Assembly: GCF_018350175.1 (NCBI RefSeq)
Contig: NC_058382.1
Coordinates: forward strand, 3,782,001-3,846,000
Origin: Felis catus
Lineage: Eukaryota
Direction: 5' to 3'
DNA: 64,000 nt
Shown: positions 6,040 through 33,240 of the stretch, one piece after another
How positions within the stretch are numbered: the first letter of the stretch is position 1
Layout of the letters: each line of letters begins with the position of its first letter
The notes under the pieces: model-generated
The model's database searches: none
Seen by the model: the letters and a program-made list of their open reading frames with translations, nothing else
What the model was told of the DNA's origin: nothing
Made by a program: the position numbers and the translations under genes

Positions 6040-6346
6040 GATTGGGCAGGTCATGGACAGGCCACGGGGGTCCTGGTGGATATGAAAAAGTTGTGCTTAT
6101 GATAGACTCTAGCCTATCAGGTGTGCATTATGTCTAAAAAAACCAATGTACATACCTTAATTTAAAAATACTTTATTGCTGGGGCACCTGGGTGGCTTAG
6201 TCGGTTAAGCATCTGACTTCGGCTCAGGTCACGATCTCGCGGTTTGTGAGTTCAAGCCCCACATCGGGCTCCGTGCTGACAGCTCGGAGCCTGGAGCCTG
6301 CTTTGGATACTGTCTCTCCCTCTCTCTCTACCCCTCCCCCAGTTGT

Positions 6347-6393
<47 letters not shown>

Positions 6394-8457
6394 AATAATA
6401 AACATTAAAAAAATTAAAAATGCTTTGTTGCTAACAAATGTTAACCATCAGCTGAACTTATAGCGAGTCATAACCCTTCTGCTGACGGAGGGTCTTGCCT
6501 CCATGTTGGTGGCTGCTGACTGGTCAGGGTGGTGGTTGCTGGAGACGGGGTGGCTGTGCCAATCTCTTCAAGATGACAACAGGGAAGTTTTCCACAACAG
6601 TTGACTCTTCCTGTCACAGTTTCTCTGTAGCAGGTTTCATACCATTTTACCCACAGTAGACTTCTTCCGAAATGGGAGTCCATTCTTTCAAATCCCGCTG
6701 CTTTACTAAGTTTGCGTGAGGTTCTAAATCCTTTGTTGTCATTTCTACAGTATTCACAGCGTCTTCTCCAGGAGTCAGTTCCATCTGAGGAAACCGCTTT
6801 CTTTGCTCATCCTTCAGGAGTGAGTCCTCATTCATTAAAGTTTTGTCATGAGAGCAGAGCAATGTAATCTCTTCTTCAGGCGCCNNNNNNNNNNNNNNNN
6901 NNNNNNNNNNNNNNNNNNNNNNNNNNNNNNNNNNNNNNNNNNNNNNNNNNNNNNNNNNNNNNNNNNNNNNNNNNNNNNNNNNNNNNNNNNNNNNNNNNNN
7001 NNNNNNNNNNNNNNNNNNNNNNNCTTCCCATGAATCACGAATGTCCCTCGTGGCATCTAGCATGCTGAGTCTTTTCCAGAAGGTTTTCAACTGACTTCGC
7101 CCAGATCCATCAGACGAATCACTGTCTATGGCAGCTATATGCTTACGAAATGTATGTCTTTATTGCTAAGACTTGAAAGTTGAAATTCCTCCTTGATCCA
7201 CGGGCGGCAGGATGCGTGCTGTGTCTGCAGGCATGAAAACAGCATTCCTCTCATTGTGCATCCCCATCAGAGCTCTTGGGTGACCGGGTACACTGTCAGG
7301 GAACAGTCATATTTTAAAGGATTTTTTTTCCCTGAGTGGTAGGTCTCCACAGTGGGCTTAAAATATTCAGTAACCCCGTGGTAAAGAGATGTGCTGTCAT
7401 CCAGTCTTTGCTGCTCTGTTTATGGAGCAACATTCTTAAGGGCCCTGGGATTTTCAGAGTGGTCACTGAGCTCTGACTTCCACTTAAAGTCAGCAGCTGC
7501 GTTAGCCCCTAACAGGAGTTGGGCTGTCCTCTGAAGCTTTGAAGCCAGGCCTTGACTTGCCCTGTCTGGCGATGAGAGTCCTATGTGGCATCTTCTTCCA
7601 GTAGGAGGCTGTTTCGTCTACACTGGAAATCTGTTGTTTGGTGTAACCACCTTCACAAGTGATCTCAGCGAGCTCTGGAGAACCTGTTGCAGCTTCTCCA
7701 TCAGCACTTGCTGCCTCACCTTGCACCTGATGTTATGGAGATTCCTTCTTTCCTTCAGCCTCCTGAAGCACTTCTGCCAGCTTCAGACTGGTCTTCTGCC
7801 GCCTCCCCGCCTCTCTCAGCATTCACAGCATTGAAGGGAGTCAGGGCCTTGCTCTGGAGTAGCACTTCCAACATCCTTCACGAATTTCTCCTTTACATTT
7901 ACAGCGGGGCTGTCTGGCACCACAGGCCTAGCTTCTGGCCGTCTTGGCCTTCGACCTGCCTTCCCCATTGAGCTTAAGCACTTCTCGTTTCTTCTGATTT
8001 AAAGGGAGAGACGTATGACTCTTCCTCTCACTTGAACACTTGGAGCCACTGTAGGGGTATTAAGGGGCCCAATCTCACCACTGTTGTGTCTTTGGGAACA
8101 GGGAGGCCCATGGAGAGGGAGAGAGATGGGGACCGGCTGGCCAGTGGAGCAGTTGGAACACACACAACATTTATTAAGTTTTCCCTCTTATGAGGGTGTG
8201 GTTCATGGCACCCCAAAACAATGACAATGGGAACATCAAAGATCACTGCTCACCCATCACCATCACAAATATAATAATCATGATAAAGCTTGAAATACTG
8301 GGATAATTACCAAAATGTGACCCAGAGACATGAAGTGAGCAAATGCTGTTGGGAAAATGGCACCAGTATATTTGCTTGACGCAGGGTTGCCCAAACCTTC
8401 AGTCTGTAGAAAACTCAGAGCGCCATGTGTGGAGCGCCATGAAGGGAGAGTGCCTGT
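6040..8457 (-). mobile_element. Near full-length Tigger1 (TcMar/pogo) DNA transposon fossil, with a Can-SINE inserted at 6181-6420
   Basis: Minus-strand transposase fragments KTFWKR...[11 protein letters not shown] (6647-7090) and GEAASAD...[20 protein letters not shown] (7502-7726, pogo DDE). Terminal-repeat-like end ...GTGCCTG at 8457. Frameshifted and dead; left end approximate. Confidence 0.92.
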
Positions 8458-24500: not shown

Positions 24501-27500
24501 TCAGCTACAGCTACTGCTACGTGGGAATCATGACAGGTGAGTGTGGCTGCGTACCCAGCCCTGCCTCCCTGCATCTCGTCACCACTGCCTGTCCCCATTC
24601 TCCACCCGGACTTTGGTGCCTGTTCTGTGATCCTGCCTCTGTTCCAACATCTGCTCCTTTTTTTTTTTTTTTTTAAATATTTATTTATTTTTGAGAGAGA
24701 GAGACTGAGTGCCAGTGGGAGAGGGGCAGAGAGAGAGGGAGGCACAGAATCTGAAGCAGGCTCCGGGCTCCGAGCTGTCAGCACAGAGCTCGAGGTGGGG
24801 CTCAAACTCACGAACTGGGAGATCATGACCTGAGCCAAAGTCAGATGCCATGCAGGTGCCCCAGCATGTGCTCCTCTTGAGGGCGAGCATCTCTGCCTGG
24901 GTCTACATCAGACTCTCCCGCTGGCCCTCCAGAGCAGAGACAGACTGTTCTTGGCCTCAGTGGTTCCTTGTGGCTTCTTGGGAGCAATCAGGAGACAAAG
25001 GAGCAAGGTCTATGCAACCCTGATGTTTCTATCACCCAAGGAACAAATACATTCACATTATGCTCCCATTTTTAGCGTCCGAAAATATTTTCCATTAATG
25101 TTGACGTCCTAGGAGGTTTTCTGTCTTTTTTTCCTAAGATTTTTTTTAAGTTTATTTATTTATTTTGAGAGAAAAAGAGCACAAGCAGAGGAAAGGCAGA
25201 GAGAGAGAGAGAAAGAATCCCAAGTAGTCAGCGCAGAGCCTGATGCGGGGCTCAAACTCACAAAGTGAGATTGTGACCTGAGCTGAAATGAAGAGTCGGA
25301 CGCTCAACCGACTGAGCCACCCGGGTGCCCCTAAGAGGTTTTCTTTTTTATGACAGCTTTATGGAACCGTAACTGATATGTTCACCCACTTAAAGCTACA
25401 TGCAGCTCAGTAGTTGTTAGCATAGTTACTGACTTGTGCGGCCATCACCACCATGTCATTGTAGACATTGCATCGTCCCAGAAGGAAACTCTGGACCCTG
25501 TAGCCATCGTCCCTCAAACCGCATCTGCCCCCAATCCCTGGGAACCACTGACTGACTCTCTGTCTCTATAGATATCCCGGTGCTGGTCATTTATGAATGG
25601 AATCCTACTCTCTTCTCTCTGTTCTTTGTGACACGTAAGGCTGTCACTTCCGTTAATCCGCACCTGCTCCCTCCCTGGGCCAGGCCGCCAGTTTATCTCC
25701 AGCGCTACCACTGTCTCCTGTTTTCCACCGGTGACCCTCTGCAGCCCCCGCCCTGCTCAGGGGCCAGGGTAAATGGCATCCCAGCACCTCTCTGTTGGAA
25801 GAGCCTACAGTGGTTTCCTGGCTCTTAGAACAAAACCCTGAGTCCTCCCTGCCTGCAACCCTCTGACCTTTTCTCAAACCACTCTGTTCCTCTCCAGTTG
25901 CACTGCCCTACTTCCTCCTTCATGCAGAGGTCACCCCCCCCCCCCCCGCCACCCCTCGGGTCCCGCCTATCTGCCCCTGTGTTTCTTGGGGACTTGTCTC
26001 CATACCCCCCACTCTCCAGCTCTTTGTTCCTCGCTACTTAGCGGTCTGTCCTTTATCTTTTTCTCTGAGCCCTTGAACTCCCCCTCTCTGGTTTCTTTCT
26101 TTGCTTTCTTTCTTTCTTTTATTTTTAATGTTTATTTATTTTTGAGAAAGAGAGCGCAAGCGGAGGAGGGGCAGAGGGAAAGGGAGACACAGAATCCAAA
26201 GCAGGCTCCAGGCTCTGAGCTGTCAGCACAGAGGGGCTTGAACTCACAAACTGTGGGATCGTGACCTGAGCCGAAGTCGAACACTTTAAGGACTGAACCA
26301 CCCAGGCGCCCCTACTTTATTTTTAAGTAATCTCTACACCCAAAGCCCCACGTGGGGCTTGAACCGCGACCCCCAAGATCAAGAGTCTAAGACTCGCTGG
26401 TTTCTTGTCCCTTTCTCTCAGAGTCTCCCTCCTCTTGTTCCCGGTTACCTAGCCCCACCCGCTCCCCCACTCCTCAGCGCCCAGTCTCAGCCCCCACCCC
26501 CCACCCCCCCCACCTCCAGACCAGTCTCTGACGGCTGCCCCTCCCTCCCGCCACAGGCCCGTTCTTCCGCTACCGCACGTACCTGGACTGGCTGGAGCAG
26601 CCCTTCCCGGGGGCCGTGCCCAGCCTGCGGCCCCTCCTGCGCCGAGCCTGGCCGGCCCCGCTCTTTGGCCTGCTCTTCCTGCTGTCCTCACACCTCTTCC
26701 CGCNNNNNNNNNNNNNNNNNNNNNNNNNNNNNNNNNNNNNNNNNNNNNNNNNNNNNNNNNNNNNNNNNNNNNNNNNNNNNNNNNNNNNNNNNNNNNNNNN
26801 NNNNNNNNNNNNNNNNNNNNNNNNNNNNNNNNNNNNNNNNNNNTTCGGGGCCTACCCCGTGGCCGCCAAAGCCCGGGCCGGGGGCGGCCCCACCCTCCAA
26901 TGCCCACCCCCCAGCAGGTCAGGCGGCGGGAGGGAGGCTTCCCAAGACCCGGCAGGCCCCGTCAGCACAGGCTGGCCCTGCCCCTAGCAGGGAGGAGAGC
27001 GGGGGAGCAGGGGGTGCAGCTTCGCCCCCTGCTGTCAGTGGAATGTCGCCCCTTGGCCACCACCGCCCACCTACCCCTGCCCTAGGGAGCAGTACTCTTC
27101 ATACCTGCCACTGCCCCCTGTTGCTAACGCTTGTCACCTCGTGGGATGGTGAATTGCTCTCTGTTGCTAGGAAAAGGTGGTATCTTAGCAACCATGTGCC
27201 TCCCCTCTGTTGCCATGGAAGTGTCACCCCGGTAACCCGGTTGTTCCTGGTTACTTGGGATACCATCTTTGGGCTGTGATGGGGCCCACCCTTTGTCGCT
27301 AGGGAGATGGTTACCTAGCAACTGGACTGCCCCTCTTTGTTAGGGGGGCGCTTCCCTAGCAACCAGGACCTGCCCCTTCCTGCTGCAAGACTCGCTTTTC
27401 ATTGCTATGTAAATGGCGCCCCCTAACCTGCCCTTGGTTACTAGACGCCAGCGCACAGGCCCCCCAACCATGTGATGTCCTCACGTAACAGCCTGCACTT

Positions 27501-30500
27501 TCTGAGGACATGGCGTCCCTGACCATGCTGTCCTCTGGCAGAGAGGACACCGCTCCCAGCAACCGCGGGTGGCTTTCCTACCACTGCTGAGGAAGTACCC
27601 CAGTAACTGTGGACTGACCTTGTTCCTAGTGCCACCCCCCCTCTTCGTTCTTGAATTGCTAGCCTGGAACTAGGGGCTATCTTGTTGCTAAGGAAGTGTT
27701 GCTCTCAGGTTGCTAGGGAAATGATGCTTCTAACCACTGGGACTGGACTCCACCTCCCCACCCCACCCCCCACTTCCCCCCTCCCCCATCCCCGGTGCCC
27801 AGCGACCATCGGTAGACCTCCGGTTACTAGTGAGGGCGTCCGCCAGAAAATGGCAAGCAGGAATTGAAGGCTTTTGTAATAGATGGCTCCCCTCCCATTC
27901 TCAGAAGCCACCTACCCTGGGGTGGGTGAAAGATGTTCGCCGCCACTGGGACTGTTGGCACCAGTGATCCAGGAGCCACTGTAGTGCTGGAGATGACACT
28001 TAACTGAATAATCATAAAGACCAGGAGGGGCCCTTTCTGGAAGTGTTTCTAAACATCCTAGGCCTTGTTCCTAAGGAATACCCTTTCCCTAGCAACAGAG
28101 ACCATCAGGTGTCACGTGGGCCTCAAACATCTCCCTAGCAATCATAGACCACCGCGTTGTTAGGGATGCTACTTCCCTAGCAACCACAGTGTCTTGACAA
28201 CTTAGGACCACACTGGGCGGCTGCTCTGAATACAGTGAGCTTGTTTGCCCTTCCCTAGCATCTGAGACCCCTGAAGGGTCAGGTTGCTGAGGACTCGTAG
28301 CTTAGCAACTGTAGCCCCTCAAGGCTTTTCGTTGCTGTTGTAGCCCTGGGACCAAGAGAAGGAGGACCCCTTGTCAGTGAACTGTTGTGCCCCCGCCCCC
28401 AGTCTTCGCCCGGGAAAAGGCTCCCTCTGGGCTACCCTCTCCGGTTGCCCTAGCAAATGTGACAGCCAGAGCTCTGGCCTGGCCGCGATCCCCTCCTTAG
28501 CATCCGGGGCTGGGACAGTAGCCAGCGTCGGGAGGGGGCCTGGCTGAGCTGCATGTCTGTCCCCCACCCTCATCCTCCACCCCCCCCAGTCCGGAGAAGG
28601 CGGCCTCCCTGGAGTACGACTATGAGACCATCCGCAACATCGACTGCTACGGCACTGACTTCTGCGTGCGGGTGCGGGATGGCATGCGGTACTGGAACAT
28701 GACGGTGCAGTGGTGGCTGGCGCAGTACGTCTACAAGAGCGCACCTGCTCGCTCCTATGTCCTAAGGTGAGCGCGCCTGCCCTGGGAAAACACGGAACTA
28801 CACCTCCCAGCAGTGCCTGGGGCTGCTTGCGGGCTCCCGGCCGGGCCTCCGCCCCAGAGGGTCATGGGAGTTGTAGTTTCTTGAGCCGGTTCCCAGCCCC
28901 TGATTTGCATTGCTCTGGGGTAAATCGTTCCCTTTCTCTGGGCCTCAGTTTCTACTTGTGTAAACTGAACATCTTCGGACAGAAGCAGTGTACTGAATCC
29001 TGTGGACTCTGGCCAGACTTTCTGGGATCCTGGCCCAGCCAGACACAGAGAAACCTTAAGTAGCTAGTTGACCTGTGTTTCCTCAACTCTTAAATGGGGG
29101 TGATGCTGTTAACTTACTTCAGAGATTGAGGAGAGGTTTAAGCGATGTGAACATACCTCACGTGAGGCCCGCCAGGTGAGTAGTCACCGTATAGTAGCTT
29201 TTATTCATTATTCATCCGATACTTCTTGAGTGGAAACTCGAGTGTGCCAGACATTGTTATGTTTACAACCTTAGGACGTAGAGCTTACTACCCTGGTTTC
29301 AAAAACAATTTTTTTAATGTTTATTTGTTTTGAGAGAGAGAGTGTGTGAGTAGGGGAGGGGCAGAGAGAGAGGAAGACACAGAATCCGAAGCAGGCTCCG
29401 GGCACCGAGCTGTCCGCACAGAGCCCAATGCAGGGCTCGAACTTGTGAGATGATGACCTGAGCCGGAGTCAGACACTTAACCGACTGAGCCACCCAGGCT
29501 CCCTGCCCTCATTTTAAAGATGAGGGAACTGAGGCTCAGAGAGGTTAGGTAACCTGCCGAGTGTCACTCCGCCTTCCCAGAGCCACCAGATGAGGTCAGG
29601 ACGCAGCTGCAGAGCTAGGAGCTAAACCTACCTGGGTGTCCGGACTGGGCACGGCCTGGATGTGGGGATGAGAACGTGAGGAAGTGAAGCGTGATGCCAG
29701 GTGATGGCTGTGAATGACTGACATGGGAAGACTGGGCAGGAGGAAGTTTCCGGAGTGGCTCGGGTGAGGGAGTGAAACTTGGGTGGAGTCCCACGGACTC
29801 CCAGGTGACTGTCAGGTTTCGGTTGGGGTTACTGGATAGGCGGTCAGTTACGGGACTCTGGCGCAGAAGGAGGAGACGGTGTGAGAAGCGGGCGCTCAGG
29901 TGCCTTCAGGTAGCGGTACCTAACACTCGGGCTGAGCAGCAGGTCAAAGCAGCGGGCGCTCCGGTGTTTCGGTTAGAGGTTCTCGGCTGGGGGCAACTGT
30001 GCCACACTCCCCGGGGGCATTCGGCAACGCCTAGGAGCCCTTTGTGCCATAACTGGGAGATGCTACTGGCAGCCAGTGGTTACAGGCCCCAGACGCTCTT
30101 CAACACCCTGCGCGGCACGGGACGGCCCCCGCTCCAGCACAGAATGATTTGGCCCCAAATGTCAGTAGTGCTGAGATTGAGAAACCCCGGTGTAGACGAG
30201 GGACGAGGAGGAGCCGGCCTAGATGGAGCCGATGAGCTAGGAGGACAGTCAGGAAAGCAGAGAGGGATCATTTGTGTCGGGTGATGTCAGGAGCTTCAGT
30301 ACAACAAAGGCTCGGGCTTGGTTGCGACGGGAGGGTGCGGGGGGAGTCTCCAGCAACCTTGACGGGAGCAGTTTGGAGAGTGGAAGTGAAAGCCAGCGGG
30401 AGTGGGTTCCAGGGAGGACGGAAGCGGGGAAAGGCTGAGGGGGAGCACGGACTGTTCTTGGGAGAGTGTGCAGGTGGGGAGAGCAGGTAGGGACCACAGC

Positions 30501-32639
30501 TCAGAGTTCAGGTGCCTGTGTGGAGTTCAAGGTGCCTGGTGGGCCGTTTATGTGCGTCCCTTCCACCCTGTTTCTCCCTGTCGGAGAACGTCTCTTGAAA
30601 TGCTCCCGACCCGGGAATTCTGTTTCCACCATTGGCAGAAAAGAAAGAACACGGTTTTGTTATTAAAGAGCTAGCATTGAGCCAGGCTGTGCACCACGTA
30701 ACCCGCTAACGGGATTACCAAAACGAAAAGAAAGCTCGCCTTGTCGGAGCCACCTGTCACCAGTCCCCTGCACAGCATGCTCCCGAGAGAAACGATAACC
30801 TGTCCTCAAGTAAGAGGAGCCATGACTGTTTGCGGTGATGCACGGTCTCCTGTTCTGCCCAAGTTCAGTTGGCAGTGGGGTAGCCACCTGTGCTGATCGT
30901 CTCTACCTGAAGGAGGAATGCAACTAGGTGTCCAGCAGGCGGTAGCGTGATGCCAGGTGCCTAGGATGAACCCCCACAGTGGCGGGGAGACAGGGGCTCC
31001 AACTCCCATGACATTTATAGTTCAAAGACTGGGTACCACCACCCTCCAGAAAAACATTCGTGGACTGTGTTTTCTTAAGGCTTATTTCCAAGCCTTTCCG
31101 AACGTTTCCATCTATATCTGAAGGACGGAGAAAAGTTTCTGAAGCACTATGTTTTTTTCGTGGAAGTGGCTGAAGAAGAGAGAGAGGGGAAAAGGTCTCC
31201 CTTTTGGGCAAGAGTGAAAATTCAGCCTTTTTACGGACTCTGTGCCTCCAAGGATGGGGGGCAGCATTATTGTGTCCTTAGGTTCAAGCACCCTGATGTG
31301 CCCCAGGGAAAGGCTGATGCCCACAGACAAGGAAGAACCCACATCTCCATTCCAGGCGGAGTCCTCTGTGGTGATTTCTGTGTCTCTGAGGAAGGAGGGA
31401 CCGGAGCCTGAATTTATAGCATTTTGGGGTCCAGAGAGAGAGGAGACCATGGCTAGAGATGACTGAGTCTTCATGAATCAGGAATTCCACTCTTAGATCC
31501 CCAAGACAAAGTGGCTAGGGGCTCAGGTTCATGGGTCTTGAGGGAAGCTGTGATAAGAGGGCATTAACTGGGTTCCTGAAAANNNNNNNNNNNNNNNNNN
31601 NNNNNNNNNNNNNNNNNNNNNNNNNNNNNNNNNNNNNNNNNNNNNNNNNNNNNNNNNNNNNNNNNNNNNNNNNNNNNNNNNNNNNNNNNNNNNNNNNNNN
31701 NNNNNNNNNNGGTCTGAAGGAGGAGGGGCTGGGGTTCTGGGCTCCTTGCTCTGAGGGAGGAGGGCCTGAGGAGTCAGGACTCCCGGGTCTCAGGGGTCTG
31801 TGCTCCTGGGTCTGAGGGAGGAAGGAGATGGGGGCCTGGACTCCTGGGTCTCACGGAGGTGGGGCTGGGGGTCTGGGCTTCTGGGTCTGGGGGAGGAGGG
31901 ACTGGGGGCCTGGACTCCTGGGTATGAGGGAGGAGGGGGCTGGGGAGGAGGGGGCTGGAGGCTGGGACTCCTGGGTCTGAGGGAGGAGGGGCGGGGGGGG
32001 GGGGTCAGGACTCCTGGTCTGAGGGAGGAGGGGCTGGGGTTCAGGACTCCTGGGTCTTAGGGAGGAAAGGCTGGGGTCTGGACTCCTGGATCTGAGGGAG
32101 GAGGGCCTGGGGAGTCAGGACTCTTGGGTCTCAGGGGTCTGTGGTCCTGGGTCTGAAGGAGGAAGGAGATGGGGGCCTGGACTCCTGGGTCTCACCGAGG
32201 CGGGGCTGGGGGTCTGGGCTCCAGGGTCCTGAATCCGAGCCCCTCCCCCAGGAGCGCCTGGACCATGTTGCTGAGCGCCTACTGGCACGGCCTCCACCCT
32301 GGCTACTACCTAAGCTTCCTGACCATCCCGCTGTGCCTGGCGGCGGAGGGCCGACTGGAGTCGGCCCTGCGGGGGCGGCTCAGTCCCGGGGGCCAGAAGG
32401 CCTGGGATTGGGTGCACTGGTTCCTGAAGATGCGCGCCTACGACTACATGTGTATGGGCTTCGTGCTGCTGTCCCTGGGAGACACCGTCCGGTACTGGGC
32501 CTCCGTCTACTTCTGCGTCCACATCCTGGCCTTGGCCGCCCTGCTGCTGGGGCTGGCTTTGGGCGGGGGCGGTCCGGGCCGGAGGAAGACCGCGCCCTCG
32601 GCCGCCAGCCTGGCCCCAGAAAAGCTCCGGGAGGAATAG
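21522..32639 (+). CDS. MBOAT7: Lysophosphatidylinositol acyltransferase 1 (LPIAT1); 7 coding exons, 472 aa
   Basis: Exons 21522-21597, 21700-21829, 22391-22517, 24377-24536, 26557-26917 (N gap 26704-26843 inside), 28590-28766, 32252-32639, total 1419 nt. Starts MSPEEWTYLVVLLISIPIGFLF, contains YWNMTVQWWL and SAYWHGLHPGYY (catalytic His), ends KLREE*. Confidence 0.98.
24657..29503 (-). mobile_element. Antisense Can-SINEs in MBOAT7 introns (24657-24865, 25138-25332, 26100-26312, 26316-26395, 29305-29503)
   Basis: Poly-T/TTTATTT start, GAGAGA body, ...GAGCCACCCAGG(C/T)GCCCC end. Confidence 0.9.
29970..30190. mobile_element. MER20 hAT MITE
   Basis: GCTACTGGCAGCCAGTGG...CCCAAATGTCAGTAGTGCTGAGATTGAGAAACCC. 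Confidence 0.8.
31530..32235 (+). repeat. MSR1-like 36-38 bp G-rich minisatellite array
   Basis: Repeated GGACTCCTGGGTCTGAGGGAGGAGGGGCTGGGG units; gap 31583-31710 inside. Confidence 0.85.
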
Positions 32640-33240
32640 GCTGCCGCGGCACCCTTTGCCAGTCGGCCCGCCCACCAAGCTTCTTGCTTGGGAATCCTGT
32701 GACCCCGGCCGCCGTCTCCTTTCCCAGAAAGATTGCTGGAGCGGCCAGGAACCTGGCGAGGATTCCCGTCTCCGCTCCGTACCCTGCGTCCGACGGAGCC
32801 GGGCTGCAGCTCTCGCTGCTTCCCCGCCCTCTGCCCTCTGCCCCGAGGGCTCAGGACAACCCTCGACCACCCAGGTGTCCCTGCCCCAGCTTCCGGAGAG
32901 AGCCGCACTCCCCGACCCTGCCAGCAGGGGCCGCCAGGCCCACGGCTTCTTGGGCACACGTCCTTTTCCTGGCACAGGGTGTGGGGTAGGAGCTCCGGGG
33001 CAGGTTCTGGGAGTGGGGAACGTCCTCCCTGGGGCTTTCGTCCCACTTGTACCAGGATTTCAGACCCGGAAGGGAACATAACCCTCCCGTTTCATAAGGG
33101 GGAAACTGAGGCACCGAGGAGCAGGCCTGCGGACATGGTTCTTGCAGCTTCCATCTGAGCCACCTCAGGGTCCCAGCGCACCTGTCACCCTCCTGTCATT
33201 CTCTGGCCTGAGACACGGTCAGAATGTGTGAGCCTCCGCC

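Follow-up and report, generated by a model that had tools for sequence, protein, structure and literature searches.

A dense array of RFX-type X-box sites in the penultimate coding intron of cat MBOAT7 as a candidate intragenic regulatory element

We analyzed a 64,000-nucleotide stretch of Felis catus DNA (NCBI RefSeq assembly GCF_018350175.1, contig NC_058382.1, positions 3,782,001 to 3,846,000 of the forward strand), referred to here as the window and numbered from its first letter, in which one intron of MBOAT7 carries a dense array of X-box sites of the RFX type. MBOAT7 is encoded on the plus strand, and its exon open reading frames (ORFs) carry PF03062. The array occupies positions 27110 to 28510 and lies in the penultimate coding intron of the gene (26918-28589, plus strand, 1,672 nt), which is bordered by a GT donor after position 26917, where the upstream exon ends, and by an AG acceptor before position 28590. 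The downstream exon spans 28590-28767 and is followed, near 32250-32640, by the last coding exon. The translation of exon 28590-28767 matches MBOAT exon ORFs with PF03062, and a word search with 28591-28767 returned 13 exon-sized MBOAT ORFs. MBOAT7 exons were searched singly. An initial annotation of the window had placed the cluster of sites in an MBOAT7 intron, which is borne out by the PF03062 exon ORFs and the splice borders at 26918-28589.

All ten exact copies of the half-site GTTGCTA/TAGCAAC named in that annotation were recovered by exact search (27120, 27163, 27186, 27316, 27357, 27684, 27709, 28090, 28178 and 28303). Eleven copies are present in the window as a whole, ten of them within the array (27120-28309) and the remaining one at 6427. 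Dinucleotide shuffles of the 64 kb gave an expectation of 4.75 copies, or about 0.1 per 1.4 kb, and the previously quoted expectation of 0.17 was thus of the right order of magnitude. Half-sites of the degenerate form GTTRCY occur at 15.6 per kb in the array compared with 1.04 per kb outside, and no other 1.4 kb of the window comes near this density. The repeated element proper is a 12-mer, GTTGCTAGGGAA, which is found four times exactly and four times with one mismatch in the array and which never occurs with fewer than two mismatches elsewhere in the window. Allowing up to three mismatches to GTTGCTAGGGAA, the array holds 23 sites in both orientations; allowing up to two mismatches to the related motif GTTGCYAKGGAR, it holds 17. 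Matches to GTTGCYAKGGAR are strongly concentrated in these 1.4 kb: of those in the whole window, all 5 without a mismatch, 11 of the 14 with one mismatch and 17 of the 59 with two mismatches fall here. First-order Markov shuffles of the region gave 1.0 matches on average and never more than 5 at up to two mismatches, against the 17 observed. A profile built from seven units of the array found nothing outside it in the window at E <3, and searches with the 12-mer and this unit profile revealed no second copy or fragment of the array in the other 62 kb. The earlier impression that nothing comparable exists elsewhere in the window therefore holds for the 7-mer, GTTRCY, the 12-mer and the whole-unit profile alike. 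The site pattern is real and the number of sites is far beyond chance. With several sites for the same factor per ~1 kb above chance expectation, the array is a homotypic cluster of transcription factor (TF) sites.

The assignment of these sites to RFX factors is well supported by sequence comparison. A FOXJ1 chromatin immunoprecipitation sequencing (ChIP-seq) study in human airway cells (PMC13720309) yielded GTTGCYAKGGAR de novo as an RFX motif from its peaks. Within the 12 nt of each array site, a strong half-site (GTTGCY) is combined with a weak one (GGAR). When the ten sites chosen by their 7-mer were compared, the unselected positions 8, 9, 11 and 12 were also found to be conserved as R-G-n-A-A while 20 positions on each side were near background; the conserved block is therefore the 12-nt footprint of an RFX X-box. 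Further, a regular-expression scan (GTNRCY-N0-3-RGYAAC) found three full-consensus X-boxes in the region. A complete palindromic X-box, GTTACC-T-AGCAAC (GTTACCTAGCAAC), lies at 27310-27322 and conforms to the full GTNRCY-N1-RGYAAC. The other two fuller X-boxes pointed out by the initial annotation are present as well, with GTTGCCATGGAAG at 27209 and GTTGCC-CT-AGCAAA (GTTGCCCTAGCAAA), a near-complete plus-strand site one base short of the full form, at 28444-28457 at the 3' edge of the array. The 16-mer at 27350-27365 (plus strand) matches, without a mismatch, the core of an electrophoretic mobility shift assay (EMSA) probe for the X-box in the human DYX1C1 promoter, and a one-mismatch copy of the same 16-mer is found at 28171-28186. 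The DYX1C1 probe was supershifted by anti-RFX1 and anti-RFX2 in EMSA, and mutation of the X-box reduced promoter activity (PMC5024701). Binding of RFX1 and RFX2 to the 27350-27365 sequence is thus indicated through sequence identity to the probe, that is, at the probe and not at the MBOAT7 locus. The initial proposal that the motif is of the RFX type agrees with both results, the fit of the 12-mer to the ChIP-derived motif and the 16-mer that one site shares with the DYX1C1 probe.

The sites are arranged in a recurring geometry. Repeat finding, the seven-unit profile and neighbor distances agree that a plus-strand site is followed 15-18 nt further on by a minus-strand site, and such a convergent pair forms an imperfect palindrome of 27-30 bp, GTTGCTAGGGAA-N3-6-TTCCCTAGCAAC. 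Among the 23 sites, five convergent pairs at an offset of 14-18 nt were observed against 0.47 expected under random placement (P 8.5e-5), and there are two further pairs with a weaker partner site. Same-orientation neighbors are 41-47 bp apart, and the pair unit repeats approximately every 44 bp. Autocorrelation peaks at 41-44 and 86 bp are weak (z 2.4-3.3), and Tandem Repeats Finder (TRF), even at a score of 30, detected no array with a period of 40-47 bp in the region. The earlier description of the spacer as non-periodic is only partly right, in view of the spacing of 41-47 bp, the weak autocorrelation peaks and the convergent pairing of the sites.

Two sub-arrays can be distinguished. The left one (27110-27445) consists of about eight units of 41-46 bp with pairs at 27163/27181, 27209/~27225, 27295/27311 and ~27336/27352, and was delineated from the direct-repeat families D1 and D3, profile matches and spacings. 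The right one (28057-28320) contains pairs at 28067/28085, 28156/28173 and 28283/28298 and single sites at 28131 and 28251. Between them, at 27684-27720, two plus-strand sites lie 25 bp apart in the same orientation, the first with one mismatch (27684) and the second exact (27709). A C-rich polypyrimidine tract of low complexity (27740-27795, periods 7 and 12) divides the array into its left and right halves. The two arms of the pairs are unequally preserved, with TAGCAAC kept in the right arm of 6 of 7 units and GTTGCTA in the left arm of 1 of 7. This difference between the arms, which is without compensation, favors independent protein sites over RNA stems. Sites standing alone, without a partner, have been preserved no less well than those in pairs.

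Enriched 7-mers in the region are limited to pieces of the X-box and GGAAGTG, an ETS-like core. The latter occurs four times in the array (27217, 27590, 27692 and 28039), about 11-fold over the rest of the window, and two of them merge with an X-box at its weak half (GTTGCCATGGAAGTG and GTTGCTAAGGAAGTG).

Based on these features, the intron may carry a homotypic RFX docking array that acts as an intragenic cis-regulatory element, a reading which we regard as evenly poised. A putative role as an enhancer or internal promoter for MBOAT7, TMC4 or adjacent genes, active in testis, brain or ciliated cells, had been put forward in the initial annotation. Tandem duplication of a palindromic X-box unit probably produced the array, and after duplication only the RFX contact positions would have been retained. 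Many dimers could then load on the array in cells expressing RFX1, RFX2 or RFX3, possibly also RFX7 or RFX5, so that it would serve as an intragenic platform, either enhancer or silencer, for MBOAT7 or a neighboring gene. Where FOXJ1 is present, it could be recruited via RFX. The FOXJ1 study in human airway cells includes MBOAT7 among the genes targeted directly by FOXJ1, and an RFX motif is present in 71% of its FOXJ1 peaks (PMC13720309); because the peak position is not given, the listing is a lead only as far as the array is concerned. In published RFX target data, Hapln4 is lower in Rfx2-knockout testis.

The retention of the sites was assessed by aligning seven units. Pairwise identity is 71-76% in the site columns compared with 35% in the 5' flank, 42% in the loop and 29% in the 3' flank, and similarity between units is thus confined to the site columns. 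Under uniform decay to flank level, an intact 9-mer in 4 of 7 units has a P of ~4e-9, although both this value and the identity contrast are partly inflated because the units were found and aligned via the motif, which takes some weight from the docking array reading even if the contrast is still large. Several other observations also count against a regulatory role. Neither CCAAT nor TGACG nor TGCGTCA occurs on either strand of 27100-28510, the forkhead core RTAAAYA is likewise absent from both strands of the region, and the region is not a CpG island, with an observed/expected CpG ratio of 0.34 at a GC content of 56% (criterion ~0.6 or more). In addition, composite-motif reporters with RFX sites, except GLI3-RFX3, were inactive in mouse embryos at embryonic day 11.5 (E11.5) in a study using consecutive affinity-purification systematic evolution of ligands by exponential enrichment (CAP-SELEX; PMC12119339), which calls for caution in assuming enhancer activity.

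The main rival explanation is a decayed and functionless minisatellite, in which slippage or unequal exchange multiplied a palindromic unit of ~44 bp that by chance resembled an X-box and whose copies are now eroding; any RFX binding would be without consequence. We consider this possible, if somewhat unlikely. It would account for the unit spacing of 41-47 bp and the weak autocorrelation at 41-44 and 86 bp as well as for an upstream CTGCCCCTCT that is partly common to the units of the left sub-array, and it fits the lack of partner motifs and of a CpG island. GC-rich, gene-dense regions are also rich in cryptic minisatellites. Against it stands the failure of TRF to find an array of this period even at its low score setting. 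Further, the 12-nt site has been retained between flanks and loops that are close to random identity, a pattern that uniform neutral decay does not generate. Thirteen sequencing runs of unstated library type (presumably DNA) from six studies contain every sampled word of the intron, and there is therefore no sign of an unstable variable number tandem repeat (VNTR) or of length instability. Part of the stretch is also present in runs labeled 'feline metagenome'. Membership in the class of minisatellites alike over the whole unit length was rejected, given the negative TRF result and the flank and loop identities of 29-42%. Compared with minisatellites that carry factor sites, the MBOAT7 array shares a head-to-tail unit of ~44 bp and a plausible origin by tandem duplication; it differs from them in that divergence puts its units beyond the reach of TRF, retention is limited to the site and the 13 runs show no copy-number variation.

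That the array is part of a dispersed repeat family, either a transposon relic or a mobile minisatellite, whose consensus carries the X-box palindrome, seems improbable to us, as no further copy, whole or fragmentary, is present in the remainder of the window, neither terminal repeats nor a target-site duplication were seen at the array, and the spacers within it are unrelated to each other. Still harder to believe is that the palindromes act as RNA or DNA structure (intronic hairpins for an RNA-binding protein, or cruciforms) or as sites for a non-RFX factor. In favor of this reading, pre-mRNA transcribed from either strand could fold into a stem of ~9-12 bp at each convergent pair, and four RNA (metatranscriptome) runs include 83-94% of the intron's sampled words in contigs that may represent either pre-mRNA or DNA carried over. 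Against it, the sense RNA of 27100-27460 folds no more stably than shuffled sequence (z -1.38), no Rfam family reached threshold, the arms differ without compensation and unpaired sites are kept as well as paired ones. In the Rfam scan, which covered window positions 1-28486 and 28523-64000, the best match scored 23.5 bits against a threshold of 80. A weak match to MIMT1_1 (22.9 bits, threshold 45) was rejected as chance similarity of GC-rich sequence.

We compared the array with known RFX systems and related classes of elements. RFX factors control ciliogenesis, spermiogenesis and expression of the class II major histocompatibility complex (MHC), and RFX7 acts on tumor-suppressor genes. One version of the half-site, CCCTAGCAACAGAG, may resemble the X1 box of HLA-DRA, part of the MHC class II module in which RFX5-RFXAP-RFXANK acts with CREB and NF-Y. 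The MHC class II S-X-X2-Y module includes an X2/cAMP response element (CRE) and a CCAAT/Y box, whereas the MBOAT7 array has neither, and this class was rejected for the absence of an X2/CRE-like box and a CCAAT Y box from the region. An RFX-FOXJ1 ciliary composite was rejected as well, since the region contains no FOX core; in the RFX-FOXJ1 module, the FOX core is located 1-9 bp downstream of the RFX motif (PMC13720309). The observed/expected CpG ratio given above led to rejection of a CpG-island promoter. Closest in motif are the ciliary promoter X-boxes bound by RFX1, RFX2 and RFX3 (DYX1C1/DNAAF4 and DCDC2; PMC5024701), which the array resembles in its 16-mer at 27350-27365 and in the combination of a strong and a weak half-site. 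Those X-boxes are single, promoter-proximal and conserved across species, whereas the MBOAT7 array comprises at least 17 intronic sites over 1.4 kb arranged in convergent pairs. Unlike the ciliary X-box genes, MBOAT7 is without a known ciliary role. In comparison with homotypic TF-site clusters of the enhancer or 'billboard' kind, the array is alike in having many sites for one factor per ~1 kb, in both orientations and with unconstrained spacers. It is unusual in its density (12 per kb), in its purity, with no second enriched motif, and in the regularity of its pairing and period.

No description of X-box arrays was found in the literature on MBOAT7/TMC4 with RFX, or on X-box repeats, VNTRs, clusters or transposable elements, which makes the initial assertion that the array is undescribed plausible. 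To our knowledge, RFX sites are almost always single, promoter-proximal X-boxes. If the docking array reading is true, an intronic array of at least 17 sites of a proven type with regular pair geometry would represent a different mode of RFX recruitment in which cooperative loading of two dimers per palindrome might be involved. The array would also lend itself, as a clean natural substrate, to the question of whether activity can arise from RFX sites alone. The human MBOAT7/TMC4 locus is associated with fatty-liver risk, so that a previously unrecognized regulatory element within the gene would matter in practice, provided that it proves conserved. Should the array only be a decayed minisatellite, it would still be a clear example of tandem duplication creating a dense cluster of TF sites. 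On a more speculative note, the array might belong to a genome-wide class of 'X-box palindrome arrays', 0.7-1.4 kb in length and located in gene bodies and 3' untranslated regions, with convergent RFX pairs at a fixed offset. In such a class, selection would act on the sites alone and the arrays would provide high-capacity RFX landing pads (enhancers, silencers or factor sinks); we offer this idea tentatively and think it rather doubtful.

Metagenome contigs were scanned for two copies of TCCCTAGCAA 25-45 nt apart, which yielded 120 loci, none of them mammalian-looking. Most of these loci are a 36-bp AT-rich satellite of one unknown organism that contains the searched 10-mer (L010, L024, L045, L053, L072 and ~50 more) and is unrelated to the MBOAT7 array. 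The base following the 10-mer is C in only ~17 of 45 classes of metagenome loci; a general X-box array rule found no support here and was dropped. Some contigs of unknown eukaryotes carry tandem CCCTAGCAAC arrays in one orientation with periods of 19-46 bp (L077, L101 and L115), and further contigs with CCCTAGCAAC arrays were noted (L002/L046, L061/L055, L062, L097 and L103). In the L077 family, a second X-box, GTTGCCATGGA, comes immediately after GGTTGCTAGGGAA, and CCAAT boxes follow the motif in L002 and L062. These eukaryotic arrays have no evident bearing on the MBOAT7 locus. Metagenome contigs were also scanned for relatives of the exon next to the array using alignment A1, which included an ORF of maybe human or primate origin (P0001), and none were found.

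Several features of the surrounding sequence were recorded. Within 28463-28589, the final ~100 nt of the intron are in frame with the next exon, and their translation in this frame corresponds to the N-terminal extensions that exon ORFs of other mammals show (P0001, P0002, P0005 and P0006). Because of this in-frame match, the 3' end of the intron appears conserved, in contrast to what can be said of the array. Copies of a carnivore short interspersed nuclear element (SINE) derived from transfer RNA (tRNA) are present in the flanking introns and upstream (26100-26400, 29320-29500, 1942-2014 and 6186-6270), two of which score as tRNA in Rfam, and no SINE is inserted in the 1.4 kb of the array. 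By its SINEs, the window is of carnivore origin. The last MBOAT7 intron contains, 30-110 nt from its 5' end and approximately 300 nt downstream of the array, a pair of ACTACA-NN-TCCCA motifs of the ZNF143/Staf-binding site (SBS) type that face each other 56 nt apart (28797-28809, plus strand; 28865-28877, minus strand). No Rfam gene lies near them. They are the only two such motifs in the 64 kb, where 0.01 would be expected, and the pair could be a promoter-like or looping element.

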